DNA of 64,000 bases from Monocercomonoides exilis PA203 (Eukaryota; Protista; Preaxostyla): contig LSRY02000003.1 in the NCBI GenBank assembly GCA_001643675.2, positions 372,001 through 436,000 of the forward strand, given 5' to 3'. Both the position numbers and the translations under genes were made by a program. Shown here piece after piece: positions 4,905 through 50,735 of the stretch (positions within the stretch are counted from its first letter, which is position 1; every line of letters begins with the position of its first letter). The notes under the pieces were generated by a model. That model ran no database searches. It saw only the letters and a list, made by a program, of their open reading frames with translations, and was not told the DNA's origin.

Positions 4905-7900
4905 ATGAAAGGAAATTCGATAACAGTATTTTTATTGGCTATAATGTCGTGTTTACATACCAGAGGCAAAGCAGTAGAAAGTGTGCTCCTTATTGGGCTA
5001 GCGGAGAACGTTGGAAATGCAAGATTCAATCACATCTGTGGTGATCAGACAAGCCTCGCCCTCATCAACACCTCCTTGTGTGTGACCCATCTCAACCTCA
5101 TCCCTCTCAGCGGTTGTCCACTCCTCACCGCCCAACAACACTCAGCTGCCTCCATCTGCTCCTCCACTTGCCAAGTCAACCCAGCAGCAAAATCTCCACT
5201 TTTCATCTCTGCCCATGCCTCCCTCGCCCTCACAAACTTCTCCCTCACCACCCATCAACCAGCCATCCTCTCCTTCCCCCTCTTCTCCACCCCAAACAAT
5301 CTCCTCCCAGATACCCACTCCCCAATCCCTGCCTCCTTCTCCATCTCCCACTCCTCCTTCTCCTCTTTCGTCTCCCTCATCCAGCCCTTCCTTTTTTCTC
5401 CTTCTTCCCTCTCTTCCCCTTCCCCTTCTCCATCTCCATCTCTTTCCCCTTCTCCTTCATCTTCCTCATCCTCACCCACATCATCTTCTTTTTCTTCCCC
5501 TTCCTCTTCTCCTTCTCCTCTCCATATTCATCGCCAATCCCATCCCCACCTCCAAATCCACCTCAATCTCCATCTCTCAAACACCATCTTCTCCAACATC
5601 TCATCTCCCCAATCCCTTCTATCACTTCCATCCCTTCCCTCACACTCACTCAATTCATTCATTTCAACCACTTCTTCCTCTTCCTCTTCTTCCTCTTCCA
5701 CCAACACCAACACCAATTTAATCCCCTCCTTCTCCCTTCACTCATCTCTCTCTATCCGCTCAACCATCTTCCTCCACACTCACAACCCCATCGATGGTTC
5801 CATCCTCCCCAACCTCAACGGCCCATCCACTTCTCTCTCCGCCTTCAATGCCTCTTTCCTCCACCAAACTCGTTCTTCACAAAATGCTGCTGTTGTGCAT
5901 GTTGGAAATGAATCTCAAAGAGCGAAACCTGGAAGATTGGATTCGTTTGATGAGAACAGCCATAAATTTGAATGGTGCGAATGGGAAAATACAACTGGAG
6001 GGCGGAATCGAGGAGGAGCGCTTTATGTGGATTGTGCAAATGCAAATCTCACAATCACTTCTTGTTCATTCAACAATTGCTCAAGTAACGGACATGGTGG
6101 AGCATTATGTTGTGATTACTTGTTGAAAATCAGCCTCACAAAATCCAATTTCACAAGCTGTTCTGCGCTTCATGGAGGAGCAGTCACCTCATGGAACCCT
6201 CAATCATCTTCTGCTTGGACATTCTCAGGCAACATAGTTGAAAGTTGTTCAATAACAAATTGGTGCGGAACTGGTTGGTATTTTGCTCTAGGAAATGATT
6301 ATACAAATTTTCAATTACTATTTTCCAAATGCAAGTGCATTTCAAATTCTGGTGGTGATGCTGCTGGTTCTTTAACATTTAATAATCCTCCCAATACTAA
6401 ACCGAGTCAATTTTCAATAAATGATTGTCAATTCATCAATAACAAATTGACTGCCTCTGTCAATTATGGAGGTGCAGCTATTTTCTACTATTCAACTTTT
6501 TCCTGGATGAATGAAATGAAATTCATCACATTTTGTTTCTTCGATGGCAACACTGCCACTAATGGCAGAGGAAACGATGTGTTCTTCAATGGCAGCAGCA
6601 TCACCCAATCTCCATTCGAGAATTGTGGATCAACAACCCTATCGAAAAGAGTATGGAATGCTGGAACAGCTGATAACGCTGTATACAACAGCTGGCTTCC
6701 AATCATCAACCAGAACAAAATCGTTGCAAATGGTGGAAGTGATGTCGATGCTTGTGGCAAAACACAGCAAAGTCCATGTGCCACTGTGGAGTATGCTCTC
6801 GGATGCGTTGCTCCCTTCAGCGATGCCTCCCTCTCTCTTCTCGTCTCCACTTTTACTCCCACAAAGACTCTCACATTCTGTGCCCCAAATACAAAAATCA
6901 CAGGAAATGGCACAACTGCCACCACTATCGCCTCCAGTGGCATTCCTCAACCATCATCATCTTCTTCTTCATTTCCTTCTTCAACATCTTCTTCACCAGA
7001 TCCATCTGCCACTTCTGCCCTCTTCCAACAGACACAGGGCTCCCTCACAGCCTCTGCCCTCGCCATAGCCCACAACTCCACAAACCAAATCACCCCCATC
7101 CTCTTCCACCTCTCCGAAAACTCCCCTTCCCTCAACCTCAACACAACCATCATCACCGGAACAACCTCCAATTCAATCACCACACCCCTCTTCTTCCTCA
7201 CTGCTGGCTCCCTCGCCCTCAATCACACAGCAATCACCCGTCTCGCCCTCAACAGCCAAAGCATCTTCCACCTCACCTCCCTCACCGCTCCCCTCACCCT
7301 CAACTCCTCCAACATCACCGACATCACCTCCACAGCCACCCCCACCAGCTGTGTCCTCTCCTCTGCCACCTCCCCTGCCCTCTCCCTCTCCCTCGCCAAC
7401 TGCACCATGACCAGCATCAACTCAGAACAGTTGAGCCAACAGACTGCCACAGATGGCGGGTGCATCTCATTCGCCTCATCTGCCTCTGACAATACGTTTT
7501 CTGCGAGCAACACCACCTTCTCCACCTGCTCTGTGAGCGAGGATGCAAGCAATGGAGGAAAAGGAGGAGGAATATATCTGGATTGCAGCCTGAATGAAGT
7601 CGGATTTCAACTTTCATCAATATCGTTTTCTGAGTGCAGTGCAACAGTTGGGAAGAACATGTTTGTGAAGAGCAACAATCTGGCGAACACTGTGAATACA
7701 GAGTGTTTTGCATTTGATTGCTCAGATTACGAGGATGATGGAAATGCATTTGTTGGGGAAGATGGGATTTATGGAGAAATGGATCTTCGAGTGTTTCTTG
7801 TATCTTTGAAGTGGGTGGTTGTAACTGTTTCGACTGGTGGTCATGACACATTGGGATGTGGAAGTGAAAAATTCCCATGCCAATCGATGAAGAGTGGAAT

Positions 7901-10900
7901 TGACCACATTGACAGAAGTGGGACAGAAGGAGAAAGGAAAGTGAAAGTGAAAGATGAAGTGACAATCGAAGATATTTATTCTTTCACAGATGCACTTGTG
8001 ATTGATGGAGAAGCCATTAAACACAAGCCAATTCATTTTGAAAAGACGATCAATGGAGATTCTGCATCATCAACAAGTGTTATTTCATCAATTCAGCCAC
8101 TCAGCTTCTTTTATTTGAAATTGCAGATCCCAAATCAATTCACACCAAGTGTGAATTCCTTAATCTCATCGAGTAATAATCTTCAACTCGAAAACTGTTT
8201 ATTTGAGATTCAATCATCAACAGATATTGTTCAATATTCATTGATATCCACAACCACTGGAAGTTGCACACTGAAAGGATGCGGTTTTGCAGATTGTTCA
8301 TTTATCAAATCTCCATTGGTATTAGCTTCTTCTGTTTTGTTTGAAAACAGCAACTTTTCATACATTGTGAATACTGGACGCAGTGGAGAAGGAGGTCTTG
8401 CAAGAGTGATATTGCAAGGGAATGAAGAATTGGTGATCAAATCAACAAATGTTTCATTTTGCTCACTTTCAGCAGGGAATGGAAAAGGAGGATTCTTGCA
8501 TCTGGATTGTGAAAATTGTTTGAATGAAAAACCATTTCTTTTGGAAACAGCTTCATTTAATAACAACAATGCAGACATTGGAAAGAACTTGTTCATTTTG
8601 GGAAAGGATTTAAATACTTCTGTGACGAATGAGTCATTCAAGTTCGATTATTCATCAATGATAGATGATGACAATTTGTTTGTAGGAAGTGATAACTTTC
8701 ACTCAAACAAAGATTTGTTCATGTTCCTCGTTCCATACAGCTCCATTGAGATATTTATCTCATCAGAAGGATTTGATGTTGCAAGATGCGGAAGTGAGAA
8801 AGAACCATGTTTCACAATGTGGAAAGGGATGGAAAACATGGAAAAGGAGATTGGAAATAAAACAATTCAAATATCAGGATCAACAATTATTCAAGATTCA
8901 TACAATGTGTCCAATTATCAGATTAAAAAAAGTGTAAAGATGGGAGAAGAAGAGGTGAAAGCCAAATTGAATTTTGAAAATGCAATTGGAGATCAACTGG
9001 AATATTTCATGGTGAATGATGATCATCTTGAATTGACAAATATTCAACTCCAACTGAAATCTGGATTTGACAATTCATCCAAAACAATTATTTCAAACAG
9101 GGGTGGAAATTTGGTGATAAGTGAATGTTCCTTCCATTCAGAAGCAGGAATGAACAATGGATTTGATTGTGTATTTGTGAATGTGATTGGAGGGAATATG
9201 GAAGTGAATGATTTGTCGATTAAGTCATGCAATGTTGGAAACAGTATTTTTGTCGTTCATGATTCTGGAATCATTTGTCATTTGACGAATGTTCGAGTAG
9301 AATCGTTGAATGAAAGCGGAGGATGTCTTCTTCTGATCAAAGGAACTGAATCACTGAAAAAGATAAATGAAGGAGGAGAGGAAATGAATCTCAACATTGA
9401 TAATTCATCATTTTCAGGAGTGAAGAGAAGTGGCAATGGACCAAGCATTCTGCGATCAAAGAGTGACAAAAAGATCGATTTGGTTGTAAAGGAGAGCAAC
9501 ATCACAGAAGACAAAGCAGAAAAAAGTGAAAAAGGAGGAGCAATATACTTCACATTGGGATCGTCTGGATCGATGAAGATGATTGACTCAAAAATCACTA
9601 ATTGCAATTGCAGTATTAGTTCAGGGAAAGGAGGAGGAGTATATTTGACAACAGATGAAAGAGGAGAATTGAATTTTTCATTTGCGGGTATGAAGTTCAG
9701 TGACAACGGTGCAAGTGTTGGAAAAGATGTTTTCATTGATTGCTTTAACATATCTTCGCAGATCAATGAAACCCAATTTCAATTTGATCTTCGAGAAGGT
9801 CATTATTCACGAATTAATGCCATCTATGGAATTGATAGCTGTGATTATCCAATCGATACAGATCTGATTGAATTTGTGACGATTCATCAGAGTGATACGA
9901 TCATTGTGAGCAGTGTGAATGGATCGGATGAGAGGCAATGTGGAACAAATGCTCTTCCTTGTGATTCAATTAATCATGGACTAATGCATCTGACTTCGGA
10001 ATTTGTGAGTCTGTTGCACGTTGACACCAAGAGCGCAATTGAGGAAGAGATTAATCTGAAGGAAATGAGTTTGAGTTCAAAGAGCAGAGAAACGTGTGAA
10101 GTTGAAGTGAAATCAAAGATAACAAGTGAAAAGAATTCTTTGATTTCAACAACAGGAACAGTTTCATTGGTGAGAGTGAATTTTGTATTTGATCCAAATT
10201 TTGCTTCTTCGCATAAATCACTGATATCACCAGAAGGAGGGATTCTTGAAATTGTGAATTGTTCATTCACCACAAAACAATCCAATGAAGAAGAAAATGA
10301 AGCTTTTGCAAATATTCAATTCCACATAATAAAAATGGAAAAAGGAGAATTACAACTTGATGGATGCACAATATCAAATCTCATTCTTCAAGAATCTGCT
10401 TTGCATCTTTCATCACCACTTCCATCAGTGATTTATTTATTTACAATTTACAATTCAGCAATTTCAAAATCTCTGATTGATATAAACGAATGTGGACAGT
10501 TGAATATGGACAGATTAAATACAGAAAATATCACAGTTGAAGGAAATGAAGAATCACTGATATCTTGCTTGTCAATGAAAAAGACGATGCAATTTGCAAA
10601 TTGCACAATTGGCGGAGTCAGTTCAAAGGCCAAAAAAGGAAAATTGATGAAATTGGAGAATTGTTTGGATGTGAAAATGGATAGTTGCTATTTTGATGGG
10701 AGTTCAAAGGAAAGAAATGAAATGAATTCAAATACAGAAGAAGAGATGTGCAGATGGGATGGATCTGTTGTGGATGTTGTGAAGAGTTCTGTGATAGTGA
10801 AAGACACAACAAACTCGAATTCACCAGATGGTGGAATAACGATGAGAGGTGGAAATGTGAATATTGAGAAAGGAGAGTTCATTAACAATAATCCCTCAAT

Positions 10901-12467
10901 TGAAGGATATCCATCATTGAGAAGAAACATCATCTGTTCAGATTCAGGAACATTGAATGTGATGAGTTTGAAGGGAGGAGATGGATTGAAGGATAACACT
11001 TCACTTTGGATGCTGAATGAAGGATGCAATTTTGAAGGGATTGTTTCAGAAAGGGATTCATCATTCTTCATTCCTGTACTGGAGAGTGTGGAAGCAAAAG
11101 AAACAACAGATAGAATGAAGCTGACATTCAAAGGGATGCTTCTTATTCCATGCAATCTGTCATTCTCAGTTGTGAAGAGGAAGGGAGATGAGAAAGAGAT
11201 TGAACATTATGATTTTGATATGGAAGGATTCTTGTCAGAAAGAGAAGCAGAAGGAAGTGTGGCAAAAGACCTGATCAGCAGTTGTGGAGATGAAATGGAA
11301 GTGAGCGTGTGTATTTTGTTTGGGAATGCAGAATCTCCTTCTTCAACAAATTCATTCATTCTGAAAAATGCTAGCATTACTCCACCAAAAGATGATGAAA
11401 GGATTGTTGAAGGAGGAAATGAGAATGACAATGGAAATGTGAATATGATTGAATGGAGTTTATTTGCCTTTATTGGCTGTGTTGTAGTTGTAATAATTCT
11501 GTTGTTCGTAATTGTTGTGGTTGTTGTGCTTTTCCGAAGGAAATTGAGGGAAGCAGAAAGGAAAGCAGAGGCAGCAGATTCAGAAGCAAAACAAATAATG
11601 GAGAAGATTGAGAGGAGAAGGGAAAACAAAAGGGGTAGCTTTGAGATGAGTGAGATGCCATCAACACTGCTGGAAGGGATGACAAGCCAAATTCCACTTC
11701 TCATTGACAACGATGAAGAAGACCTTCCAGAGCCTCCACCAATGACTGATGGAGAGCTGAATGAAAATGATTTTCCAGATTTGGAACCACCATTGCTATT
11801 TTCTGAGGACGATTCTGCTGCTGGAGCACCAAAATCTCATTCACTCAATGTGATATCAGCGAAGAAACCATTTCGAGAGAAAGAGAAAAAGAACATCAAA
11901 ACATTACACTCAGTGATTCATTCAGTTCAGGGCAATTTCACACTGGGAACAAGAGCGATGGATGTTGTTGATGGGAAGGAAGTGGTAAAAGTAGTGGCAG
12001 AGCTGTTTGAGCATTTGATTTCAGTTGATGATGAAAGGGTGGAAATGATGGCGAGGCAGCTGTGTCCATATTCAATCTTTGTTGAAGAAGGGAACAATGA
12101 AATATACCTATTGACTGAAGAATTGGAGGATGAAAAACAGAAGGAAGAAATGAAACGATGGAAGGCACCAGAAATTGGAAATGAAGATGAGGAAGTGGAA
12201 AATGATGGAATTGAGCAAGCAGTTGTATTCACACTTGGACTGATACTCCATGAAATGACAACAGGTGAAGTTCCATTGAGCGAGTGTGAAGCCGAGGAAG
12301 CACAGGAGATGATGAGGGATGGAGTGCGACCACTGACAGAAGGAATCGAAGGGGAAGAAATGGCTGAGCTGATAGAGAGGATGTGGGCAGATGAGCCAGA
12401 TAGCAGGCCAACTTTGGGAGAAGTGATTCAATCGCTGATGGAAATGGCAGAGAATGATGCAGAGTGA
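4905..12467 (+). CDS. Surface receptor copy A (2520 aa): signal peptide, beta-helix (Pmp/pectin-lyase-like GGAI/FxxC) repeats, TM helix, TKL-like pseudokinase C-lobe
   Basis: Intronless ORF with hydrophobic N-terminus. Repeated GGA(L/I/V) and FxxC/FxxN motifs and CG....PC module boundaries. TM WSLFAFIGCVVVVIILLFVIVVVVVLF (~11454-11534) followed by RRK. C-terminal RWKAPE, VFTLGLILHEMTTGEVP, GVRP and W..EP..RP motifs. Confidence 0.9.
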   Translation: MKGNSITVFLLAIMSCLHTRGKAVESVLLIGLAENVGNARFNHICGDQTSLALINTSLCVTHLNLIPLSGCPLLTAQQHSAASICSSTCQVNPAAKSPLFISAHASLALTNFSLTTHQPAILSFPLFSTPNNLLPDTHSPIPASFSISHSSFSSFVSLIQPFLFSPSSLSSPSPSPSPSLSPSPSSSSSSPTSSSFSSPSSSPSPLHIHRQSHPHLQIHLNLHLSNTIFSNISSPQSLLSLPSLPSHSLNSFISTTSSSSSSSSSTNTNTNLIPSFSLHSSLSIRSTIFLHTHNPIDGSILPNLNGPSTSLSAFNASFLHQTRSSQNAAVVHVGNESQRAKPGRLDSFDENSHKFEWCEWENTTGGRNRGGALYVDCANANLTITSCSFNNCSSNGHGGALCCDYLLKISLTKSNFTSCSALHGGAVTSWNPQSSSAWTFSGNIVESCSITNWCGTGWYFALGNDYTNFQLLFSKCKCISNSGGDAAGSLTFNNPPNTKPSQFSINDCQFINNKLTASVNYGGAAIFYYSTFSWMNEMKFITFCFFDGNTATNGRGNDVFFNGSSITQSPFENCGSTTLSKRVWNAGTADNAVYNSWLPIINQNKIVANGGSDVDACGKTQQSPCATVEYALGCVAPFSDASLSLLVSTFTPTKTLTFCAPNTKITGNGTTATTIASSGIPQPSSSSSSFPSSTSSSPDPSATSALFQQTQGSLTASALAIAHNSTNQITPILFHLSENSPSLNLNTTIITGTTSNSITTPLFFLTAGSLALNHTAITRLALNSQSIFHLTSLTAPLTLNSSNITDITSTATPTSCVLSSATSPALSLSLANCTMTSINSEQLSQQTATDGGCISFASSASDNTFSASNTTFSTCSVSEDASNGGKGGGIYLDCSLNEVGFQLSSISFSECSATVGKNMFVKSNNLANTVNTECFAFDCSDYEDDGNAFVGEDGIYGEMDLRVFLVSLKWVVVTVSTGGHDTLGCGSEKFPCQSMKSGIDHIDRSGTEGERKVKVKDEVTIEDIYSFTDALVIDGEAIKHKPIHFEKTINGDSASSTSVISSIQPLSFFYLKLQIPNQFTPSVNSLISSSNNLQLENCLFEIQSSTDIVQYSLISTTTGSCTLKGCGFADCSFIKSPLVLASSVLFENSNFSYIVNTGRSGEGGLARVILQGNEELVIKSTNVSFCSLSAGNGKGGFLHLDCENCLNEKPFLLETASFNNNNADIGKNLFILGKDLNTSVTNESFKFDYSSMIDDDNLFVGSDNFHSNKDLFMFLVPYSSIEIFISSEGFDVARCGSEKEPCFTMWKGMENMEKEIGNKTIQISGSTIIQDSYNVSNYQIKKSVKMGEEEVKAKLNFENAIGDQLEYFMVNDDHLELTNIQLQLKSGFDNSSKTIISNRGGNLVISECSFHSEAGMNNGFDCVFVNVIGGNMEVNDLSIKSCNVGNSIFVVHDSGIICHLTNVRVESLNESGGCLLLIKGTESLKKINEGGEEMNLNIDNSSFSGVKRSGNGPSILRSKSDKKIDLVVKESNITEDKAEKSEKGGAIYFTLGSSGSMKMIDSKITNCNCSISSGKGGGVYLTTDERGELNFSFAGMKFSDNGASVGKDVFIDCFNISSQINETQFQFDLREGHYSRINAIYGIDSCDYPIDTDLIEFVTIHQSDTIIVSSVNGSDERQCGTNALPCDSINHGLMHLTSEFVSLLHVDTKSAIEEEINLKEMSLSSKSRETCEVEVKSKITSEKNSLISTTGTVSLVRVNFVFDPNFASSHKSLISPEGGILEIVNCSFTTKQSNEEENEAFANIQFHIIKMEKGELQLDGCTISNLILQESALHLSSPLPSVIYLFTIYNSAISKSLIDINECGQLNMDRLNTENITVEGNEESLISCLSMKKTMQFANCTIGGVSSKAKKGKLMKLENCLDVKMDSCYFDGSSKERNEMNSNTEEEMCRWDGSVVDVVKSSVIVKDTTNSNSPDGGITMRGGNVNIEKGEFINNNPSIEGYPSLRRNIICSDSGTLNVMSLKGGDGLKDNTSLWMLNEGCNFEGIVSERDSSFFIPVLESVEAKETTDRMKLTFKGMLLIPCNLSFSVVKRKGDEKEIEHYDFDMEGFLSEREAEGSVAKDLISSCGDEMEVSVCILFGNAESPSSTNSFILKNASITPPKDDERIVEGGNENDNGNVNMIEWSLFAFIGCVVVVIILLFVIVVVVVLFRRKLREAERKAEAADSEAKQIMEKIERRRENKRGSFEMSEMPSTLLEGMTSQIPLLIDNDEEDLPEPPPMTDGELNENDFPDLEPPLLFSEDDSAAGAPKSHSLNVISAKKPFREKEKKNIKTLHSVIHSVQGNFTLGTRAMDVVDGKEVVKVVAELFEHLISVDDERVEMMARQLCPYSIFVEEGNNEIYLLTEELEDEKQKEEMKRWKAPEIGNEDEEVENDGIEQAVVFTLGLILHEMTTGEVPLSECEAEEAQEMMRDGVRPLTEGIEGEEMAELIERMWADEPDSRPTLGEVIQSLMEMAENDAE

Positions 12468-13090
12468 CATGAGATACGAATTCAAGAACACCAACCAAAA
12501 ACTTGCATTTTGTGAAATTGGAGGAACTGAAACTTGCTTTTCTCTTTTTGTTTAATTTGAAGTTTTTTTAAAATGATTTGTGCTGTCCAAAAACGTTTTA
12601 TATGATGGCTTTGTGGTTATTTTTATGAATAATCGCGTCAATACTAAAATCTAATTAAAAACCAAAACTTGTTTTCCATTTCGTTGCTTATTCAAGTCCA
12701 TTTTGATTTGGAATTGAAAAAGTGATTTGTTGAAAAGTTTAATCAGCTTTGAATGTTATTTGAATTTCATTTTATCGCTCATGCCAAACAGCTGAGAATA
12801 TCATTATATTTCAAGCAACAACTGCTTCAAATCAGGTTTTCAATTATGTTCTAAAATGCATTGCATTGGAAATGAAAGGAAAATTAAATAAAACCACTCG
12901 TTTTAGCGAAAAATATTTATTTAGTGAATTTTCATGTGAATTTTCTAATGGCTAATCCTGTTTGAAATCAAACTTTTTCTTCAGTCTTCATCGTTTTTTT
13001 CTCAATGTGAATTCCATATACTGCTTCAAGTACAACTGACAGTTTCAGAAACAGTTGTTGTACAATTTTTCATAATCAATCAGATAATCA
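12468..13090 (+). repeat. 3' non-coding arm of the inverted duplication (partner 43460-44087)
   Basis: Alignable by eye to the reverse complement of ~43460-44087, e.g. catgagatacgaattcaagaacaccaacc, atcgctcatgccaaacagctgagaatat, tttgaaatcaaactttttcttcag. Confidence 0.9.

Positions 13091-14630: not shown

Positions 14631-14631
<1 letters not shown>

Positions 14632-14670
<39 letters not shown>
14632..14670 (+). repeat. Poly(A) tract (~39 nt)
   Basis: Directly visible homopolymer. Confidence 0.95.
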
Positions 14671-36127: not shown

Positions 36128-36581
36128 TGCAAAGTTAAATCCAAATTGGTAAATGTGAAATGAAACCAATTACTGCCCATAATAATTATTGGATAATTCA
36201 GAAGTATTTTGACAATTGTTTATTGAGTGAAAAAAATAATATTTGTTTCGAAGGTCTGACTTCCTAATTAATGACTTATCATTTCGTTGATGATACACTG
36301 ACAATCATCTCAAATATTTTCAAATGAAATTAAAATATCACTAAAAATTGGCAAACAACAATTTAATAAGGAATATGCTGTTAATGCGGGAATGTTTGCC
36401 TTTCAATAATACACGCATAATATAAATGTGCAAATGTTTTAAAATTAATAGTGTGCTTCTATTTTATCTGAAGCATGTTAAAAATGTCCATAAAAAAAAA
36501 GAAAAAATCAAAAAAAAAATTAAAAAAAAATTAATAATAAAATAATAAATAAAAAATAATCATTAAATATAATAAAATAAT

Positions 36582-37020
<439 letters not shown>

Positions 37021-37072
37021 TGTATCTGGGAAAAACGAAATTTAAAAAATTAACATTTCTTAGTATATGAAA

Positions 37073-37170
37073 TTTGAATAATCTTCTTCAATTCAAATAA
37101 ATCCATTTATTTCAAATAAAGTTGGTTTATTTTAAATGAAGTTGGTATATTTTGAATGAAGATAATTTAT
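37073..37170. repeat. Degenerate ~20-bp tandem array (TTYRAATRAAGTTGGTTTAT)
   Basis: Units at 37111, 37131 and 37151. A related array lies at 41617-41715. Confidence 0.6.
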
Positions 37171-37559
37171 ACAGATAAACGCTGAAAACCATCATGAAAA
37201 AATTTTGAAAAATTATATTTTATTTTTTGAAATTGCTAATTGGTTCATTTGGTGTAGTTTTTTGAAGTATAAATAATACATTTTTTTAACAATTTTGATC
37301 TTTAAGTTTTTAAATGGAAATATGACTAAATTCCAACAAAATGAGCTTCAAAGACAAAAAAAAAGAAAAAATCCGAGAGTTAAAGTTTATTTCACTTATA
37401 TTTTAATGTTTATTTTGGAAAAAACACAGATGATGCGATTTTCATTGGATAAAAATGTTGAGAGGAAAAGTGAAATGTTCCGAACAGTTTCATTTCATGA
37501 AACACAAATAACTGCAAAAGTGTACGAAATGAAGCGTGGAAGTTGACTACCTTGATTTT

Positions 37560-38899
37560 CTTTTTTCTTCTTCCTCTCCTTCCAGCTCTTTTTCATCACA
37601 TATTATCTCCTCCCAGATGCAAATCCCTAAATCACAGCCTCCTCCTCCGTCTCTGATTCTTCTTTCTCGTCTTTCATCTCTCTTCACAATTCCTTCCTTT
37701 TTTCTCCTTCCCCTCTCCATATCCATCACCAATCCCATCCCCACTTCCAAATCCATCTCAATCTCCATCTCTCAAGCACCCTCTTCTCCAACATCTCCTC
37801 TCCCCAATCCCATCCATCTCTTCCATCCCTTCCCTCCCACTCACTCAATTCATTCACCTCAGCCATTTCTTCCTCTTCTCTCTCTTCCACCAACACCAAC
37901 ACCAATACAATTCCCTCATTCTCTCTTCACTCATCCCTCTCCATCCACTCAACCATCTTCCTCCACACCCACAACCCCATCGATGGAGCCATCCTCCCCA
38001 ACCTCAACAGCCCATCCACTTCTCTCTCTGCCTTCAACGCCTCTTTCCTTCACCAAACACGCTCTTCACAAAATGCTGCTGTTGTACATGTTGGAAATGA
38101 ATCTCAAAGAGCGAAACCTGGAAGATTGATTTCATTCGATTTAAACAGCCATCGCTTTGAGTGGTGCGAACGGAATGATTCAACTGGTGGAGAAAGTTAT
38201 GGTGGTGCACTTTCTGTTTCTTGCATAAGTGCAAGTCTCACGGTCACATCTTGCTCTTTTCACAATTGTTCAACCACTGGGGAAGCAGGAGCGTTATACT
38301 GTGGGCAACTATTGAATATTAACACTGCAAAATCAAACTTCACCAGCTGTTCAGCTGCTCATGGTGGAGCAGTCACTTCTTGGGGTCCTCAATCAAATTC
38401 TGTTTGGACATTCTCAGAAAACAGAGTGGAAAGTTGTAAAATAACAAATTGGTGTGGAACCGGCTGGTATTTCTTGCTCGATGACATGCCATCAAACGGA
38501 AAATTTTTGTTTACCAAATGCAAGTGCATCTCAAATTCTGGTGGTGATTCTGCTGGTTCTCTGACATTCAATAATCCTCCACAAAATAAACCAATTCAGT
38601 TTTCAATCGTTGAGTGTCAGTTCATCAATAATAAATTGACAAGTTCATCAACATCATGGGGAGGAGCTGCGCTTTGCTGCATAAACACCCTCATTTGGAT
38701 GAATGGAGTCATATTCATCACATTTTGTTTCTTCGAAGGCGTCACTGCAACTAATGGAAGAGGAAGCGATGTTTTCTTTAGTGGCAATGCCATAACCCAA
38801 TCTCCATTCCAGCAATGTGGTTCAACAACTCCAACACAAAGACTGCGGAACAGCAATACAGCTTATAATGCTAAGTGCAACAGTTGGCTTCCAATCATC
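37560..38899 (+). pseudogene. Receptor copy C: startless fragment with the C-rich tract and beta-helix head only
   Basis: Homologous to ~5300-6708 and to the reverse complement of ~48870-50330. In-frame TAA at ~37628, no signal peptide or ATG, and homology ends right after WLPII. Confidence 0.85.
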
Positions 38900-40480
38900 T
38901 TATCTCCTTTTTTTCATATGAAAATTCATGAGAAATTTCATCTCTTCATTTTCTTCATTCTCTTCCTCACCCTCTCTTCCTATTCCTTCCGCATCGACTA
39001 TGTTTGTGAAAATATACCTTTTGAATGTGAAGCTGAAGCTACAGCTTCCGTGTCCACTTCTCCAAAACCTCATGTATTATTTCCTCTTTCTGCTTTTGTT
39101 CTTTATATTTCTCAAAAATAAACTTCATGTCTCCATCAACTTTCCCTTCTTTCACCTCCTCCTCTTCCTTCTCAATATCAATCGAATTTCTCTCTATCTC
39201 TGACTCCTCAAACATAGCCAAATCATTCTTCGATATATGCATTTGTTCCTCATCTTTCTTTTCTCCATCTGAACTTCCATCAAAAGTTATGTCCAAAGAC
39301 CCATCTGCTGATTCTTATTCTGCTCTCCTGTTCTCCTGTTGGATGTTATCGGATGGAGAAGAACTGCATCCTTCACTTTCTGTTAATTACTGTTTTTCTG
39401 CCTCAGTCTCTGTCCTCGCCTTCGCAAACCTCAACCGACTCGTTCCAAGCACCTCCACAACCAGCGGCGCCATCGCTTCTTCCAGCTTCCCCTGGTTCTC
39501 TTTGATTCTCTCCACAAACTCTCTGTGCGCTGTCGGATACCCGCCTTTCTCCTCATTCCCATCACCTCCCTTTCTCCCTCCCTTTTCTTCTCCCTTTTCT
39601 TCTCCCTCCACCTCTTCTCGCTCCTCAAGCACCACCAGCACAATTGCTTCAGACAACAAAACCATATCCTCCATTCTCAGCTCCGCAGCATCCAACCCTT
39701 TCTCAACAATCTCCTCCACTTCACACACTGCAACGCTTTGCACCATCACTTTCTCGTCCAGCTTCACTACCACATGCATCGATCGCGGCTATCGCTAAGA
39801 CAGCAGCAATGTTATAAACAGATCTCATTCACATCTTCCGCTGCAAAAATCGCTTGCTCCCCGACTTCGTGCCCACCGACGCTGCAAGCGACGGAAGTGG
39901 TTCCACCAGCGGAACAGAAAGCATTGCCAAAAGCATCATATCGTAGGCACACACAACACCTCCATACAGCACCGCCCGCCGCTCCACTACATATCCCAGC
40001 AGCGTCTGTAGCGCATGCCGCGACAGCGGCATGTGCCGCTCATCACCCCAGCTATCTCAAGTGCAACAATCCGCAGCCGCCTCTCGAAGTCGTCCATCGC
40101 TTCTGCTGATGTGTATGATGCTGCCACCGCGGAGGTATCCGAAGGGTCAATAGCAGGTGCTGATGATGACTTGTCATTCTCTAAAGATTTCTTCTCTTCA
40201 CTTCTCCGACTCCGGAATGGTGAAGTTGATCGGCGCGCTGCTCCAGATCAGAATGAAGAAATATATTAGGAAGATGGGATTTGATCTGAAAGAAACAAAA
40301 GTAGTGGAAGAAGAATGAAGAGAAGATGAAAATGAGCCATTGCTTTCTACGGCACGTGAGCAGCAGCATTTCATTGATGGAGAAAGAATGCGTTTTTGAG
40401 TGTTTCTGAGTTGAATCACTGCCAGCGATAAGTGAGGACGAAAAGGGAGAAAGAGATCATTGCAGCCAGAAGGATATGAA
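38900..40480 (-). pseudogene. Disrupted fragment of an unrelated protein-coding gene
   Basis: Coding-like frames (AMDDFERRLRIVALEIAG / MPLSRHALQTLLGYVVERR / MHVVVKLDEKV..) broken by at least two frameshifts and several in-frame stops. Confidence 0.6.
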
Positions 40481-41616
40481 GAAGAAGAAGAAGAAAGAGG
40501 AGGAGGAGGAAGAAGAAGTGAACTGATGAAATAATTAAAAGTCTTGTTTTATGAAGGTTAACGATAACAAATTAAAAGATGCTTGTCGAGATCAATCTTT
40601 ATCTGACTTATTCTTCTTTGGTTGCACATTCTTCTGGCAAACAGTAATTACTGGATTTTTCAAACGTTCAACTTGCCCCTTCATCTCTTGTCAACAAAAA
40701 AGGAAACATATGGTAATCCACATTTCTGTTTTTTCCAACTCTCATTTTCCTCTATGATTTCCTTTGTTTATATAAAAAATATCTTTCAACTTAAGCGTTT
40801 CCTCAACTAGAACAAATATCAAGCGTTTTATAATGTTATATTCACGCTCAATTTATGTATATACACCTTTTCTCATCCGTCTTTCTTTTTTTGATATATT
40901 CTTTCCTCCTTTTTCTTCGTCTCGCTGAAAATGGATTTCTTCTTCATCTAAAAATCAGTCGTCATATTTCAATTCTGTTGCTCTTTTGTAAAGTTCCATA
41001 TTATCATTTCATTAGCCTAAATAAAAATATGAATATTCAAATGCGTAAAACAACACATTCAACATTATTCAGGAAAATAAACCTTCAATATAACTTGCAA
41101 ACATTAATTCTGATTCAAGTTTGAACGTTTAAAGGATAATTCTTCATTACTGCTCCACGAATATGAATTTGAACTATTTGTTTTTATTTCTCCTTCCATC
41201 AACAATTTTCGAAAAATTGTAATGATCTTCCTTTCTGAAAGAACTTGTATGCTCCTAGGATTTCTCTTTCATAAGATCTGTTGTCTTGTAAACCAAATAT
41301 CGAGTATCAAAAATTCAACAATTCCATATTTTTTTTAAATTGAAGTTTTCACTCAACAAACTCACTCAGAGAAACATTGAAAATTGCTTTTGATAAATGT
41401 ATTTTAAAGTTTATGTGTTTGGAATTTCCTTTAAATGCGTCCAAGTCGATGAGTTCATTTGTTGGAATTTCGAAAAAAAGAAATCATCTTTTCACTTTTT
41501 CATTGAAGAGAAAAACACATAAAAATAATTTTCACTGAACATTATAATTATGATGTTCTTTATTCTGTTCTTAATGAAATCATGATTTATCAGAAACTCA
41601 AATGAATTATGGAATT

Positions 41617-41715
41617 TCTAAATGAAGTGAGTTTATTTGAATAAAGTATGTCTTATTCAAATAAACTTTTATTTTTTTCGAATAAAATGAAGTTATTTCA
41701 ATTGAAAATTTTTAT
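41617..41715. repeat. Degenerate ~20-bp tandem array related to 37073-37170
   Basis: Units tctaaatgaagtgagtttat / ttgaataaagtatgtcttat / tcaaataaacttttattttt / ttcgaataaaatgaagttat. Confidence 0.5.
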
Positions 41716-41739
41716 TCAAAATTTATCAAGTGCCTAAAT

Positions 41740-41779
41740 TCTTTCTTTCTTTCTTTCTTTCTTTTTTATTTCTCTATCT

Positions 41780-41821
<42 letters not shown>

Positions 41822-41893
41822 CTTCTTTTCTTTTCTTTTCTTTTCTTTTCTTTTCTTTTCTTTTCTTTTCTTTTCTTTTCTTTCTTTTTTTTT
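41740..41893 (+). repeat. Compound (CTTT)n/(CT)n/(TTTTC)n microsatellite
   Basis: Directly visible. Confidence 0.95.
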
Positions 41894-43459: not shown

Positions 43460-44087
43460 ATGGGAATATCCGAAAAATTGTGAAAAACTACACAATAGCT
43501 GTTTATGAAACTATCAATTGAACACTAAACATAATATGGAATTCACTATGAGAAAAAAATGATGAAGGCTGAAGAAAAAGTTTGATTTCAAACAGGAATA
43601 GCCATTAGAAAATTCACATGAAAATTCACTAAATAAATATTTTTCGCTCATACGAGTGGTTTTATTATTTTTTCCCTTTCATTTCCAATGCTTGGCATTT
43701 GCAAATATCATTGAAAAGCCTGATTTGTAGTAGTTGTTGTTTGAAAAATAATAATTATATTCTCAGCTGTTTGGCATGAGCGATAAAATGAAATTCAAAT
43801 ATATTCAAAGCTGATTAAACTTTTCAACAAATCACTTTTTCTATTTCATATCAAAATGGACTTGAATGAGCTATGAAATAGAAAACAAGTTTTGGTTTTT
43901 TATTAGATTTTAGTATTTCCACGATTATTCATAAAAATAACCGCAAAGCCATCATATAAAACATTTTTGGACAGCACAAATCATTTAAGAAGCTTCAAAT
44001 TGAACAAAAAAAGAAAAGCAAGTTTCAGTTTCTCCAATTTCACAAAATGCAAGTTTTTGGTTGGTGTTCTTGAATTCGTATCTCATG
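43460..44087 (-). repeat. 3' non-coding arm of the inverted duplication (partner 12468-13090)
   Basis: Reverse complement aligns with 12468-13090. Confidence 0.9.
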
Positions 44088-47000
44088 TCACTCTGCATCA
44101 TTCTCTGCCATTTCTGTCAATGATTGTATCACCTCACCCAAAGTTGGTCTGCCATCTGGCTCATCTGCCCACATCCTCTCTATCAGCTCAACCATTTCTT
44201 CTCCTTCGATTCCTTCTATCAGCGGTCGCACTCCATCCCTCATCATCTCCTGTGCTTCCTCGGCTTCACACTCGCTCAAAGGCACTTCCCCAGTTGTCAT
44301 TTCGTGGAGTATCAGTCCAAGTGTGAATACAACTGCCTGCTCAATTCCTTCCTCTTCCTCTTCCTCCTCTTCATTTCCAATTTCTGGTGCCTTCCATCGT
44401 TTCATTTCTTCCTTCTGTTTTTCATCCTCCAATTCTTCAGTCAATAGGTATATTTCATTGTTCCCTTCTTCAACAAAGATTGAATACGGACACAGCTGCC
44501 TCGCCATCATTTCCACCCTTTCATCATCAACTGAAATCAAATGCTCAAACAGCTCTGCCACTACTTTTACCACCTGCTTCCCATCAACAACATCCATCGC
44601 TCTTGTTCCCAGTGTGAAATTGCCTTGCACTGAATGAATCACTGAGTGCAATGTTTTGATGTTCTTTTTCTCTTTCTCTCGAAATGGCTTCTTTGCTGAT
44701 ATAACATTGAATGAATGAGATTGAGATATTCCAGAAACAGAATCGTCCTCAGAAAAAGGTACTGGAGATTCCAGATCTGGATGATCATTCTCATTCGGCT
44801 CTCCATCAGTCATTGGTGGAGGCTCTGGAAGATCTTCTTCATCGTTGTCAATGAGAAGTGGAATTTGGCTTGTCATCCCTTCCAGCAGTGTGGATGGCAT
44901 CTCACTCATCTCAAAGCTCCCTCCATTGTTTTCCCTTCTCCTCTCAATCTTCTCCATTATTTGTTTTGCTTCTGAATCTGCTGCCTCTGCTTTTCTCTCT
45001 GCTTCCCTCAATTTCCTTCGCAAAAGCACAACAACCGCAACAATAACAAACAACAGAATAATAATAACTGCAACACAGCCAATAAAGGCAAACAAACTCC
45101 ATTCAATCATATTCACATTTCCATTGTCATTCTTATTTCCTCCTTCAACAATCCTTTCATCATCTTTTGGTTGAGTAATGCTAGCATTCTTCAGAATGAA
45201 TGAATTTGTTGAAGAAGGAGATTCTGCATTCCCAAATAAAACATGCACACTCACCTCAATTTCATCTCCACAACCGCCGATAAGATCTTTTGCCACACTT
45301 CCTTCAACTTCTCTTTCTGACAAGAATTCATTTGAGTCAAAATCATAATGTTCAATCTCTTTCTCATCTCCCTTCTTCTTCACAACTGAGAATGACAGAT
45401 TGCATGGAACAAGAAGCATCCCTTTGAATGTCAGCTTCATTCTATCTGTCTCTTCTTTTGCTTCCACACTCTCCAACACAGGAATAAAGAATGATGAATC
45501 CCTTTCTGAAACAATCCCTTCAAAACCGCACCCATCATTCAATATCCAAAGAGAAGTGCTATCCTTCAATCCATCTCCTCCTTTCAAACTCATCACATTC
45601 AATGTTCCAGAATCTGAACAGATGATGTTTCTTCTCAATGATGGATATCCTTCAATTGAGGGATTATTGTTCTCAAATCTTCCATCATTAACAGTCATTT
45701 CCCCTCCACTCATTGTTATTCCACCTTCTGGTGAATTCGAGATTGTTGTGTCTTTCATCAAAACAGAACTCTTCTCAACATCCACAACAGATCCATCCCA
45801 TCTGCACATCTCTTCTTCTGTATTTGAATTCTTTTCATTTCTTTCATTTGAACTCCCATCAAAAATGCAACTGTCCATTTTCATATCTGTGCAATCTTCC
45901 ATTTTCATCAATTTTCCTTTTGTGGCCTTTGAACTTACTCCGTCCATTGTGCAATTTGCCAATTGCATCGTCTTTTTCATTGCCAAGCAAGATATCAGTG
46001 ATTCTCCATTTCCTTCAACTGTGATATTTTCTGTATTGAAATCTTTAATTGTTAATTGTCCACATTCGTTGATATTTATCAGAAAAGTTTCAATTGTTGA
46101 ATTGCAAATCGTTAATAAATAAATCACTGATGGAAGTTGAGAAGAAAGATATAATGCTGATTCTTGAAGAATGAGATTTGATATTGTGCATCCATCAAGT
46201 TGTAATTCTCCTTTTTCCATTTTTATTATGTGGAATGGAATATTTGCAAATTCTGCATTAATTCCTTCCATCAGTTGTTTTGTAGTGAGCGAGCAATTCA
46301 CAATTTCAAGAATTCCTCCTTCTGGTGATATCAATGATTCATGAGAAGAAATGAAATTTGCATCAAATACAAAATTCACTCTCAGCAATGAAACTGTTCC
46401 TGTTGTTGAAATCAAAGAATTCTTTTCACTTGTTATCTCTGATTTCACTTCAACTTCACACGTTTCTCTGCTCTTCGAGCTCAAATTCAATTCTTCCAGA
46501 TTAATCTCTCCTTCAATCATGCTCTTTGCCACAATGAACATCAGACGAACAGGTTTTGATGTCAGGTGCAAAAGACCATGATCAATCGAATAACAAGGAA
46601 ATTCACCACTTCCACATCCCAATGTGTCATGTCCATCTTTCGAAACAGACACGACCGTCCACTTCAAAGAAACAAGAAACACTCGAAGATCCATTTCCCC
46701 ATAAATCCCATCTTCCCCAACAAACGCATTTCCATCATTAGAATATCCTGAGCAATCAAATGCAAAACGCTCTATTTTCACCGTATTCACCAGATTCCCA
46801 CTCTTCACAAACATGTTCTTCCCAACAGTTGCCCTGCACCCAGAAAACGATATCTCTGTGAGTTGAAATCCGACTTCATTCAGACTGCAATCCAAATATA
46901 TTCCTCCTCCTTTCCCTCCATCGCTTGCATCCTCACAAACACATCCAACAAATGAACTATTTTCAATGGAGACATATCCTCCTTCACTCAACACTATCTT

Positions 47001-50000
47001 CAGTGCTCCTCCCTCTTTGCTCTTCTCCGACACTGCCCCTTCTATCTTGCTTCCATTCATCGCCATCCCAACTCCCACACTCCCTCCAAACACTGCTGCC
47101 TCTTCACCTCCATCAATCTCCAATCCTTCCGTTGTGCAATTCAATAGCTTCACCTTGTATTCCTGATCATTCACAGTTCCTAATAAAGGAGAAATTGAAA
47201 ACAACGAAACGGTTGATTTCGCATCTGAAATCGTGACAGAGTCCAGTTCAACCATCTTCCCTGTCGATTTGATCAAAAAATATCCAATTGTGTTTTGCTT
47301 CCCTCCATTCACACTCATCTCACAGTTCTTCATGTGCAACTCCCCATTTTGAGTGCTCGATTCAATCACTGATGTGATTACTCTGTTAAAAGTCGATGGC
47401 ACAACAATCCCAATGAACTCCATTTCTGTGGGTGATGATGATTTCAGAACACACGCTTCAGATCCACTCACTTCCCTTTGGCATTCTATCTCCACAATTG
47501 TCTCGGTTTTTGCCTTTATACACATATTACTCACATCCACACATCCAGTTAAAGACGATTTTGCAGATAAAATTATTTCTTCTTTAACATTCAGTGTTCT
47601 CTTCAAGCGTTCCATTCCACAATTAACATTCAAACATGGCGCCTTCTCCAATCCACAATATACCCTCTCCACTCCGGATATTCCATCCACATATATTGTA
47701 TCATCAAAGAATCCATCAAAAAATATGAATAAATCGACATCCCAATCACCGAATGCTTCTGTTCTGTCATGTCCAGCAACCGAGTTGTCTTTCTGAGTGA
47801 TGCTTGTCATGAAGGCGAACAAGGGCTCTTTCACAGAAACGACAAATGATCCACACACAAAATACATATCTCTTCCGACACTCGCTTTGTTGGCTGAAAA
47901 CACGATATTGGTGACGGAAAAGGTTGTGGATGACACTTCTGAATCATCCTTGTACTCGATCATGAGAGCACCGCCTCTTCCTCCAGAACTTGTATCCTCG
48001 CTCACAGAGCAGGTGGAGAAGATGGTGTCACTCACAGAAAACGAGTTGGCAGGGACAGATGAGGCGAATGAGATGCACCCGCCATCTGTGGCAGTCTGTT
48101 GGTTTTGTGGAGCTGAGTTGATGTTTGTGATGGTGCAGTTGGCGAGGGAGAGGGAGAGGGCAGGGGAGGTGGCAGAGGAGAGGACACAGCTGGCGGGGGT
48201 GGCAGTGGAGGTGATGTGAGTGATGTTGGAGGAGTTGAGAGTGAGGGGATTTGTGAGGGAGGTGAGGTGGAAGATGCTTTGGCTGTTGAGGGAGAGTTGG
48301 GTGATTGCTGTGTGGTTGAGGGCGAGGGAGCCAGCAGTGAGGAAGAAGAGGGGGGTTGTGATTGATGATGAAGATGAGGTTGTTCCAGTGATGGTGGTTG
48401 TGTTGAGGTTGAGGGAAGGGGAGTTATCGGAGAGGTGGAAGAGGATGGGGGTGATTTGGTTTGTGGAGTTGTGGGCGACGGCAAGGGCAGAGACTGTGAG
48501 GGAGCCCTGGGTCTGTTGGAAGAGGGCAGAAGTGGCAGATGGATCTGGTGAGGAAGATGTTGATAATGATGATAATGATGAAAGAGATGATGTTGATTGT
48601 GATGAGTGTGAATGTGAGTTTTGTGGTTGAGGAATGCCACTGGAGGCGATGGTGGTGGCATCTGTTCCATTTCCTGTGATTTTAGTGTCAACCGCGCTGA
48701 AAGTGAGTGTTTGAATGGGAACAAACGTTGAGGAAAGGAGGGTGAGGGAGGCGTCTTTGAGGAGGGAAATGAAGCCGTTGAGGGCATACTCGATGGTGGC
48801 GCATGGGGTCTGTTGGGGTCTGCCACAGGCGTCAACGTCGGTTCCATTGCTGGCAACGATTTTGTTCTGGGCAATGAGGGGGAGCCAGCCATTGTACACA
48901 GCGTTATCAGCAGTTCCATTATTCCACACTCTTTGCGTTGGGGTTGTTGATCCACAATTCTCAAATGGAGATTGAGTAATGGCATTACCACTGAAGAACA
49001 CATCATTCCCTCTGCCATTAGTTGCGGAATTACCATCAAAAAAGCAGAAAGTGATGAATTTTACTCCGCTCATCCAAGAGAAAGTATTTGTGCAACACAG
49101 TCCAGAACCTCCATAAGCAGATGAATTTGTCAATTTGTTATTGATGAACTGACACTCAACGATTGAAAACTGAATTGGTTTATTTTGTGGAGGATAATTA
49201 AATGTTAATGATCCCGCAGCATCACCACCAGTATTTGCTATACACCAACATTTGGAAAACAAGAATTGAGCATTTGTTTGGGCATTTTGGATAGAAAAGC
49301 ACCAAGAAGTTCCACACCAACTTGTTATAAAGCAACTTTCAACAACATTTTCAGAGAACGTCCAAATAGAATTAGGTTGTGGACCCCACGAAGCGAATGC
49401 TCCTCCATGAGCAGCCGAGCAACTGGAAAAATTGGATTTTGCAATGTTCATTTTCAACAAATAGGCACATAATAATGCTCCTCCTTCTCCAGAAGCTGAA
49501 CTATTGTGAAATGAACACGAAATTATTGTGAGATTTGCATTCGTGCAAGTAACATAAAGTGCACCACCATGATTTGATCCGCCATTTGAATTATTCCATT
49601 CGCACCATTCGAAGCGATGACTGTTCACATCAAAAGAAGTCAATCTTCCAGGTTTCAATTTTTGAGATTCATTTCCAACATGCACAACAGCAGCATTTGG
49701 TGAAGAGCGTGTTTGGTGGAGGAAAGAGGCGTTGAAGGTTGAGAGAGAAGTGGATGGGCTGTTGATGTTGGGGAGGATGGCACCATCGATGGGGTTGTGA
49801 GTGTGTTTGAAGATGGTTGAATGGATGGAGAGGGATGAGTGAAGGGAGAAGGAGGGGATTGAATTGGTGTTGGTGTTGGTGGAAGAGAGAGAAGAGGAAG
49901 AAATGGCTGAGGTGAATGAATTGAGTGAGTGGGAGGGAAGGGATGGAAGAGATGAATGGGATTGGGGAGAGGAGATGTTGGAGAAGATGGTGTTTGAGAG

Positions 50001-50735
50001 ATGGAGATTGAGGTGGATTTGGAAGTGGGGATGGGATTGGTGATGGTTATGGAGAGGGGAAGGGGAAGAGGAAATGGAAGGGGAAAGGGAAGGGGAAAGG
50101 GAAAGGGAAGGGGAAGGGGAAGAAAAAAATGATGATGATGATGAGGATGAGAAAGATGAAGGAGAAGGGGAAAGAGATGGAGATGGAGAAGGGGAAGGGG
50201 AAGAGAGGGAAGAAGGAGAAAAAAGGAAGGGCTGGATGAGGGAGACGAAAGAGGAGAAAGAGGAGTGGGAGATGGAGAAGGAGGCAGGGATTGGGGAGTG
50301 GGCATGTGGGAGGAGATTGTTTGGGGTGGAGAAGAGGTGGAAGGAGAGGATGGCAGGTTGGTGGGTGGTGAGGGAGAAGTTTGTGAGGGAGAGGGAGGCA
50401 TGGGCAGAGAGGAAGAGGGGGCAGTGGAGGAGGTGGTGGTTTTTGGTGAGGGAAGGTGGGTGGATGGTGCAAGTGGAGGAGCAGATGGAGGCAGCCGAGT
50501 GGTGTTGGGCAGTGAGGAGTGGACAAGCAGCGAGAGGGATGATATTGAGATGGGTCACACACAAGGAGGCGTTGATGATATTCAGACATGTCTCAACACA
50601 TGTGATATGATTGAATCTTGCATTTCCAACGTTCTCCGCTTGCCCATTGGGGATAGTGCTTTCTATTGCTTCACCCCTGGTAAGTAAACACAACATTATA
50701 GCCAATAAAAATATTGCTGTCGAATTTCCTTTCAT
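44088..50735 (-). CDS. Surface receptor copy B (~2215 aa), paralog of 4905-12467
   Basis: Intronless ORF. ATG at 50735 (MKGNS) matches copy A. Same architecture, with near-identical TM and pseudokinase tail. Confidence 0.9.
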   Translation of the reverse strand: MKGNSTAIFLLAIMLCLLTRGEAIESTIPNGQAENVGNARFNHITCVETCLNIINASLCVTHLNIIPLAACPLLTAQHHSAASICSSTCTIHPPSLTKNHHLLHCPLFLSAHASLSLTNFSLTTHQPAILSFHLFSTPNNLLPHAHSPIPASFSISHSSFSSFVSLIQPFLFSPSSLSSPSPSPSPSLSPSPSSFSSSSSSSFFSSPSPSLSLSPSLSPSISSSPSPLHNHHQSHPHFQIHLNLHLSNTIFSNISSPQSHSSLPSLPSHSLNSFTSAISSSSLSSTNTNTNSIPSFSLHSSLSIHSTIFKHTHNPIDGAILPNINSPSTSLSTFNASFLHQTRSSPNAAVVHVGNESQKLKPGRLTSFDVNSHRFEWCEWNNSNGGSNHGGALYVTCTNANLTIISCSFHNSSASGEGGALLCAYLLKMNIAKSNFSSCSAAHGGAFASWGPQPNSIWTFSENVVESCFITSWCGTSWCFSIQNAQTNAQFLFSKCWCIANTGGDAAGSLTFNYPPQNKPIQFSIVECQFINNKLTNSSAYGGSGLCCTNTFSWMSGVKFITFCFFDGNSATNGRGNDVFFSGNAITQSPFENCGSTTPTQRVWNNGTADNAVYNGWLPLIAQNKIVASNGTDVDACGRPQQTPCATIEYALNGFISLLKDASLTLLSSTFVPIQTLTFSAVDTKITGNGTDATTIASSGIPQPQNSHSHSSQSTSSLSSLSSLSTSSSPDPSATSALFQQTQGSLTVSALAVAHNSTNQITPILFHLSDNSPSLNLNTTTITGTTSSSSSITTPLFFLTAGSLALNHTAITQLSLNSQSIFHLTSLTNPLTLNSSNITHITSTATPASCVLSSATSPALSLSLANCTITNINSAPQNQQTATDGGCISFASSVPANSFSVSDTIFSTCSVSEDTSSGGRGGALMIEYKDDSEVSSTTFSVTNIVFSANKASVGRDMYFVCGSFVVSVKEPLFAFMTSITQKDNSVAGHDRTEAFGDWDVDLFIFFDGFFDDTIYVDGISGVERVYCGLEKAPCLNVNCGMERLKRTLNVKEEIILSAKSSLTGCVDVSNMCIKAKTETIVEIECQREVSGSEACVLKSSSPTEMEFIGIVVPSTFNRVITSVIESSTQNGELHMKNCEMSVNGGKQNTIGYFLIKSTGKMVELDSVTISDAKSTVSLFSISPLLGTVNDQEYKVKLLNCTTEGLEIDGGEEAAVFGGSVGVGMAMNGSKIEGAVSEKSKEGGALKIVLSEGGYVSIENSSFVGCVCEDASDGGKGGGIYLDCSLNEVGFQLTEISFSGCRATVGKNMFVKSGNLVNTVKIERFAFDCSGYSNDGNAFVGEDGIYGEMDLRVFLVSLKWTVVSVSKDGHDTLGCGSGEFPCYSIDHGLLHLTSKPVRLMFIVAKSMIEGEINLEELNLSSKSRETCEVEVKSEITSEKNSLISTTGTVSLLRVNFVFDANFISSHESLISPEGGILEIVNCSLTTKQLMEGINAEFANIPFHIIKMEKGELQLDGCTISNLILQESALYLSSQLPSVIYLLTICNSTIETFLININECGQLTIKDFNTENITVEGNGESLISCLAMKKTMQLANCTMDGVSSKATKGKLMKMEDCTDMKMDSCIFDGSSNERNEKNSNTEEEMCRWDGSVVDVEKSSVLMKDTTISNSPEGGITMSGGEMTVNDGRFENNNPSIEGYPSLRRNIICSDSGTLNVMSLKGGDGLKDSTSLWILNDGCGFEGIVSERDSSFFIPVLESVEAKEETDRMKLTFKGMLLVPCNLSFSVVKKKGDEKEIEHYDFDSNEFLSEREVEGSVAKDLIGGCGDEIEVSVHVLFGNAESPSSTNSFILKNASITQPKDDERIVEGGNKNDNGNVNMIEWSLFAFIGCVAVIIILLFVIVAVVVLLRRKLREAERKAEAADSEAKQIMEKIERRRENNGGSFEMSEMPSTLLEGMTSQIPLLIDNDEEDLPEPPPMTDGEPNENDHPDLESPVPFSEDDSVSGISQSHSFNVISAKKPFREKEKKNIKTLHSVIHSVQGNFTLGTRAMDVVDGKQVVKVVAELFEHLISVDDERVEMMARQLCPYSIFVEEGNNEIYLLTEELEDEKQKEEMKRWKAPEIGNEEEEEEEEGIEQAVVFTLGLILHEMTTGEVPLSECEAEEAQEMMRDGVRPLIEGIEGEEMVELIERMWADEPDGRPTLGEVIQSLTEMAENDAE

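Follow-up and report, generated by a model that had tools for sequence, protein, structure and literature searches.

A stretch of 64 000 nucleotides (nt) from Monocercomonoides exilis PA203 (the window; positions 372001–436000 of contig LSRY02000003.1, here C25, in an assembly of 82.3 Mb and 101 contigs) contains two genes for giant proteins, A and B, together with a fragment, C, and a relic, D. A sequence-only reading of this window had taken the four for members of a variable surface-receptor system that combines a constant pseudokinase tail, shuffled stalk modules, a divergent beta-helix head and silent head-only copies. We followed up this proposal within the window and in genome-wide searches, in each of which the best 40 candidates were scored. 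A and B lie where they had been placed and both are intact open reading frames (ORFs). The protein of A is composed of a signal peptide, a Ser-rich linker, the beta-helix head, the stalk modules s1-m2-m3-m4-px, an immunoglobulin (Ig)-like domain, a transmembrane (TM) segment and a kinase-remnant tail. B follows the same plan, but module bi is present and most of m2, m3 and m4 is lost, with the junction of this loss at a repeated CG..PC motif. Coordinates are collected in Table 1.

The public models of both genes omit the signal peptide, the linker and most of the head (4905–6506 in A and 49074–50735 in B); the model of A begins 534 codons late, at residue 535, inside the head. RNA depth is zero upstream of position ∼4897, just before the first ATG of A, while DNA depth there is nonzero. 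This onset speaks for the long frame and against the public start. Many public gene models of relatives look shortened likewise. In contigs of four sequencing runs (2016, 2022 and 2024) position 10116 reads G in all four and A in the assembly, and position 9539 reads T in three; assembly errors or contigs of paralogs are possible causes.

Table 1. Features of the window and of the related head-only loci. Positions are those of the window unless a contig (C) or locus (L) is named; aa, amino acids.
Feature	Position	Strand	Description
Gene A	4905..12467	+	Intact ORF, 2520 aa
Gene B	44088..50735	-	Intact ORF, 2215 aa
Variable head of A	5895..6704	+	Predicted right-handed beta-helix built of GGA/FxxC coils; its loops form a mosaic of variants that other copies share
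Variable head of B	48876..49685	-	Predicted beta-helix head
Loop-4 tract of A	6262..6345	+	Best genome match, at 98% identity, is a palindromic pair of head-only copies (C25:1.548/1.554 Mb)
Gene-conversion tract of A	6519..6715	+	197 nt without a mismatch to a neighbouring full gene (C25:445 kb), the rest of the two heads being 77% alike
A/bi junction	7521..7570	+	355-codon module bi absent in A, present in B; same architecture in 14 relatives
TM and cytoplasmic tail of A	11454..12464	+	Kinase C-lobe alone recognisable
TM and tail of B	44091..45101	-	92.3% identical to A
Head array	C25:1480000-2548433 (loci L032-L066)		At least 77 heads, most bodiless; tandem and palindromic
Head-only copies with ATG, signal peptide and linker	L032:347-2557; L052:1251-3560		Could encode secreted proteins of ∼700 aa
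Transposon	37065..41728		Non-autonomous DNA transposon of 4664 bp, bounded by terminal inverted repeats (TIRs) that are degenerate and by an AGT target duplication
Fragment C	37692..38899	+	Linker end and head, cargo of the transposon; no ATG, no signal peptide
Second transposon cargo	39140..40250	-	Disrupted part of a gene from a different multi-copy family
Left half of D	51225..52210		Dispersed repeat of ∼1 kb, 319 candidate places
Right half of D	52222..53096	+	Frameshifted, decayed Ig-like and TM relic of a distant subfamily

The heads of A and B are 71.5% identical (28.5% of residues differ) and in their core 68% identical (32% differ), close to the third that had been estimated by eye. 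As had also been noticed, the differences fall between the GGA/FxxC framework positions: in the head alignment GGA, GTG, GSL and FxxC are fixed and variation falls after them. In a codon comparison the two heads showed a synonymous divergence (dS) of 0.83 and a ratio of nonsynonymous to synonymous divergence (dN/dS) of 0.24, whereas dS was 0.15 in the linker and distal stalk and 0.22 in the proximal stalk. Five genes of C25 repeat this pattern. Overall, head dS stands at 0.8 and dS elsewhere at 0.15–0.3. Divergence along the gene is thus not uniform, and the head is older at silent sites too, not in its residues alone.

The head is predicted to fold into a right-handed beta-helix (predicted local distance difference test scores of 70–94 over the coils). 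With this model Foldseek gave no significant match; a wider structural aligner returned beta-helices as all top matches (tailspikes and polysaccharide lyases, Z 12–15, maximum 15.4). The cut-off of the Pfam family Chlam_PMP was not reached by any of 23 heads, one of which came to an E value of 0.054, and the language-model neighbours of the head are parabasalid and Chlam_PMP clusters (0.91–0.92). GGA(I/L/V) and Fxx(N/C) beta-helix coils are shared with the Pmp-like proteins of trichomonads and Chlamydia, and the Pmps of trichomonads, which are metamonads, form a likewise expanded, TM-anchored family (PMC6701047; PMC11166332). However, trichomonad Pmps end in a TM segment and a short tail, whereas the M. 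exilis proteins exceed 2000 aa and carry a kinase remnant. The predicted fold of the head by itself indicates no function.

Across comparisons head dN/dS ranged from 0.24 to 0.30, well below 1, and positive selection on the head was rejected. In a FUBAR-like test twice the log-likelihood difference was 32.8 with one tree, dropped to 21.2 when five segment trees were allowed and to 7.5 when ten were, and so behaved like an artefact of recombination; with this fading of the site-level signal only T412 and Y529 remain as sites. We also rejected adenine-directed mutagenesis by a diversity-generating retroelement, as variation per consensus base was 0.18 for A, 0.17 for C, 0.13 for G and 0.18 for T. 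The diversity of the heads is one of old variants reshuffled. Of the four findings named in the earlier proposal as refuting it, three (uniform divergence, congruent trees and no recombination signal) did not turn up, in support of a recombining repertoire, and the fourth, a head dN/dS well below 1, did.

Recombination between heads was detected in several ways. The pairwise homoplasy index (PHI) test gave p = 0.001 for 36 heads, and significant identical tracts were common to 43 of their 630 pairs, across full, truncated and transposon-borne copies; the weaker of these pairs may be inflated by conserved blocks. Identical loop peptides reappear in differing combinations in full and truncated copies. 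The trees of head, stalk and tail are not congruent: the head tree was rejected by tail and by proximal-stalk data (approximately unbiased test, p = 0.004 and 0.0005, respectively), and module distances are nearly uncorrelated among 38 proteins (Spearman ≤0.33). These data show that old loop variants, limited in number, are redistributed among heads by short conversion tracts (50–200 nt) and that ectodomains become joined to different tail types.

We searched the genome with 10 variable loop windows of A and B. Neighbouring full genes matched four of the 10 at 96–97%; three of these four, out of four windows tested in the B head, have their match in the full gene located at C25:511 kb. For five of the 10 no donor above 89% was found genome-wide. 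In the contigs of the four runs no head variants of A were seen; this comparison covered A (5.9 kb) in contigs, which drop rare variants. Two RNA runs yielded contigs that agree fully with A-specific stretches of the head. Both genes therefore change slowly, chiefly through exchange with their neighbours.

The stalk behaves differently from the proposed shuffling of modules, which we rejected. In 54 close full-size relatives the order is always s1-bi-m2-m3-m4-px-Ig and presence alone varies: 15 carry all modules, 19 are without m2 and 14, as A, without bi. The junctions of these losses lie in repeated motifs, showing that whole modules are lost from a fixed order through recombination between such motifs.

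The TM segment and tail had been called almost identical between A and B. They are well conserved, at 92.3% identity (7.7% differ; 95.4% identity in the kinase-like part), with a dN/dS of 0.18, but their dS of 0.21 is no lower than that of the stalk. Homogenisation was therefore rejected as the cause; with tail dN/dS at ∼0.15–0.2, the conservation is due to purifying selection and local kinship. The match to Pfam PF07714 spans profile positions 158–258, Pfam and PDB matches cover the C-lobe only, from about APE onward, so that no N-lobe with Gly loop and VAIK lysine is recognisable, and neither HRD nor DFG was found in 15 aligned tails. As these established kinase motifs are absent, we infer that the tail is a non-catalytic remnant and not an enzyme; it would probably serve for docking or sorting. 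The pseudokinase part of the earlier proposal is retained in this form and its constancy is not, because three tail types stand under one ectodomain type: among 38 proteins with the A/B ectodomain, 33 have another tail type (∼30% identical to that of A), three a third type and two that of A, which occurs in at least 40 genomic copies. In one relative (L069:8190-8260, C25:857.8 kb) the reading frame is interrupted in the proximal stalk and continues in a different one; the tail of this relative differs in type from that of A.

The family of A and B comprises the same genes as the published 'protein tyrosine kinase' or tyrosine kinase-like (TKL) family of M. exilis; relatives are publicly annotated under names such as 'Protein tyrosine and serine/threonine kinase'. 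According to two genome papers (PMC6759080; PMC8767320), protein tyrosine kinases are the largest gene family of this organism, with 332 counted and 320 of them TKL, and overlap with 'unclassified repeats'; the passages found there contain nothing on ectodomains, recombination or head-only arrays in this family. Nor did our literature search find a paper on its ectodomains or on recombination among its members. In contrast to the published label, the C-lobe is all of a kinase that is recognisable. The head motif occurs 336 times and the stalk motif 222 times in the genome, and at least 54 full-size close relatives have an A/B-type ectodomain. A and B are thus members of a germline family of several hundred giant single-pass surface receptors or adhesins, and the largest gene family of a model amitochondriate eukaryote is re-identified as surface receptors with a predicted beta-helix and a probably dead kinase remnant. 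Given 336 head motifs, four members in 50 kb would be no special cluster; A, B and the head fragment C are real, D is a distant relic beside a repeat, and the four copies taken alone are ordinary family members and debris.

A pool of head-only copies does exist, although C and D, which had been proposed for this role, do not form it. The pool is an array on the same contig, 1.1–2.1 Mb from the window, and forms the most striking part of the system. An exact stalk motif stands behind six of its at least 77 heads, compared with 16 of 20 heads in the rest of C25; between 1.48 and 2.10 Mb we counted 36 exact head motifs versus four stalk motifs, and in the other listed regions 62 versus 71 (Fisher p = 4e-7). 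Each unit consists of a conserved 5′ arm (110–320 nt), the head and a 3′ arm (0–200 nt), and units are arranged in tandem and in inverted pairs whose arms form near-perfect palindromes. The 5′ junctions vary, and an in-frame upstream ATG is absent in 14 of 20 array heads examined (two cut by the locus edge). No stops were found in the heads of 18 array copies that are ∼20% apart; neutral drift does not allow this (P < 1e-5 in simulation, even at 2% drift). Three of the 18 contain one-base indels, possibly assembly errors, and two of these three have an intact palindrome partner. Two array heads tested genome-wide had best matches of 86% and 82% and no near-identical source. In full genes, fourfold silent divergence is 0.20–0.54 at codons 351–675 and ≤0.12 beyond codon 700; the zone of high divergence thus ends (codon 675) where the longest cassettes end (codon 668).

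The array copies can be compared with heads carried by a transposon, of which fragment C is one. Between copies of this element the right flank is 91–98% alike and the heads are 62–84% alike, with head dN/dS of 0.2–0.4, so its cargo has been overwritten from the family pool. Private framework changes number 0.33 per copy in the array, 1.33 in full genes and 4.0 in transposon-borne heads, two of four of which contain stops. Copies that take up tracts without giving any do therefore decay.

We consider it somewhat more probable than an even chance that slow germline conversion diversifies the receptor family and that the tip-only array on C25 acts as a readable reservoir of heads. Ordinary ectopic recombination diversifies the family over evolutionary time, and the array would remain readable because it occasionally donates tracts to full genes, a slow supply on which many receptors would draw together; the putative ligands of the heads would be gut bacteria or glycans. 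Several observations weigh against this reading. Only one of the 10 loop windows (A loop 4, 98%) matches the array at 95% or more; tracts are common to all classes of copy, and the two 3′-arm haplotypes shared by cassettes with one junction fit flow from gene to array at least equally well. Most array copies were selected for their resemblance to A, a choice biased towards intact copies, and five copies chosen by a flanking repeat instead had 1.0 framework change per copy. Two copies of the putatively silent array have an ATG and a signal peptide, and the low dS in the flanks of the head may partly stem from strong C bias there. If transfer from array to gene is real, the system would lie between the ordinary conversion of multigene families and programmed antigenic variation, with a cassette-like reservoir that would serve many genes and not one expression site; the origin of cassette systems would then be testable, since M. 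exilis is a culturable commensal.

The head-only copies might instead be debris of a birth-and-death family with ordinary conversion between its full genes, looking intact only because dense palindromic arrays are overwritten from genes faster than they mutate, and donating nothing. Where loops of A and B have close matches, these lie mainly in full genes nearby, the transposon-borne heads are visibly overwritten and the arms of the array are near-perfect palindromes, all of which this account explains. However, overwritten transposon copies gather stops and framework damage and array copies do not, and the two array heads tested have no close full-length source; we regard one-way decay as unlikely, if still deserving of attention. 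Clean frameworks would also fit direct selection on short secreted or spliced proteins, such as decoys or soluble lectins, that donate nothing. In two array copies a single frame of ∼700 aa runs from an ATG through signal peptide and linker to the head, but the missing upstream ATGs and varying 5′ junctions described above make such a role improbable. A bolder version of the reservoir, to which we give slightly more credit than to the short proteins, though still little, is that selection maintains a megabase-scale collection of receptor tips from which many giant receptor-pseudokinases have their heads rewritten, possibly fast enough for cells to differ. Such a repertoire would resemble antigenic variation or chicken-type gene conversion in its construction but would serve for sensing bacteria and not for immune evasion.

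A further alternative is programmed antigenic variation, in which silent cassettes rewrite one or a few exclusively expressed loci within a lineage; the earlier proposal had compared the layout with the repertoires of Borrelia vlsE and trypanosome variant surface glycoproteins (VSG). Anaplasma msp2/p44, Borrelia vls, Neisseria pilS and the trypanosome VSG archive likewise keep truncated copies in clusters, each with a variable core flanked by conserved arms, and produce mosaics by segmental conversion, as in the M. exilis heads, and the clustering on one chromosome recalls the functional pseudogenes of msp2 (PMC2789410). However, those four systems feed a single expression site fast, and in msp2 or vls systems expressed segments closely match their donors (PMC2789410). 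M. exilis has hundreds of full genes (at least 54 full-size relatives, 222 stalk motifs) with several tail types, and most A/B loops have no recent whole-loop donor, five of 10 windows lacking one above 89%; two defining tests of a cassette system, a single expression locus and close donors, have thus failed. The head of A was unvaried from 2016 to 2024 in contigs, which drop rare variants, and the organism is described as a commensal (PMC6759080). Another family member could be the expression site, yet we find this explanation very improbable, and the analogy to vlsE or VSG fails wherever it could be tested, although the system works somewhat in the manner of cassettes.

Large families with a variable ectodomain, one TM segment and a kinase-type tail are also known from the transmembrane kinases of Entamoeba and the receptor-like kinases of plants, which evolve by duplication and conversion. 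Their ectodomain folds differ from that of M. exilis and their tails are mostly whole kinase domains; to our knowledge, no head-only reservoir has been described for either.

Fragment C had been taken for a silent head copy. It is a real head fragment, 80–82% identical to A and B at the DNA level, but we rejected it as a purpose-built cassette because it is transposon cargo and belongs to the most damaged class: its frame is open, with six private changes at framework positions. As cargo it receives tracts and decays. The junctions of the element recur on at least 10 other contigs, and 19 exact left ends were found genome-wide. All eight copies with both ends show 3-bp ANT duplications: AGT flanks the element around C, and the other seven have AAT or ATT. 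A 3-bp ANT target duplication is the signature of Pangu-type PHIS transposons (PMC4482050), and like the Pangu group and Pack-type elements the C element has TIRs and ANT duplications and carries host gene pieces; unlike them, it has had its cargo repeatedly overwritten by other family versions. This copy contains no transposase, and no search was made for an autonomous partner. Directly left of the element lies a run of ∼450 nt of pure (TAA)n (36575–37020); (TC)n and (TTTTC)n lie directly right of it.

Relic D, proposed as a decayed member of the A/B family, gave no tblastn match to A or B and was rejected as a silent copy of them, being a distant relic beside a repeat. Its Ig-like and TM piece is ∼50% identical to intact genes elsewhere. 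The repeat that forms its left half also precedes B-like genes and follows head-only copies of one class. Inverted pairs of it, 7–12 kb apart, were observed on C7, C26, C30, C35, C39, C54 and C58, and it is possibly one arm of a transposon with long TIRs.

Elsewhere in the window, long ORFs at 243–4427, 54660–58340 and 58473–60095 gave no convincing Pfam match. An open frame of more than 5000 codons on the minus strand (20442–35837) is rich in low-complexity and coiled-coil-like stretches and is unrelated to the receptor family.

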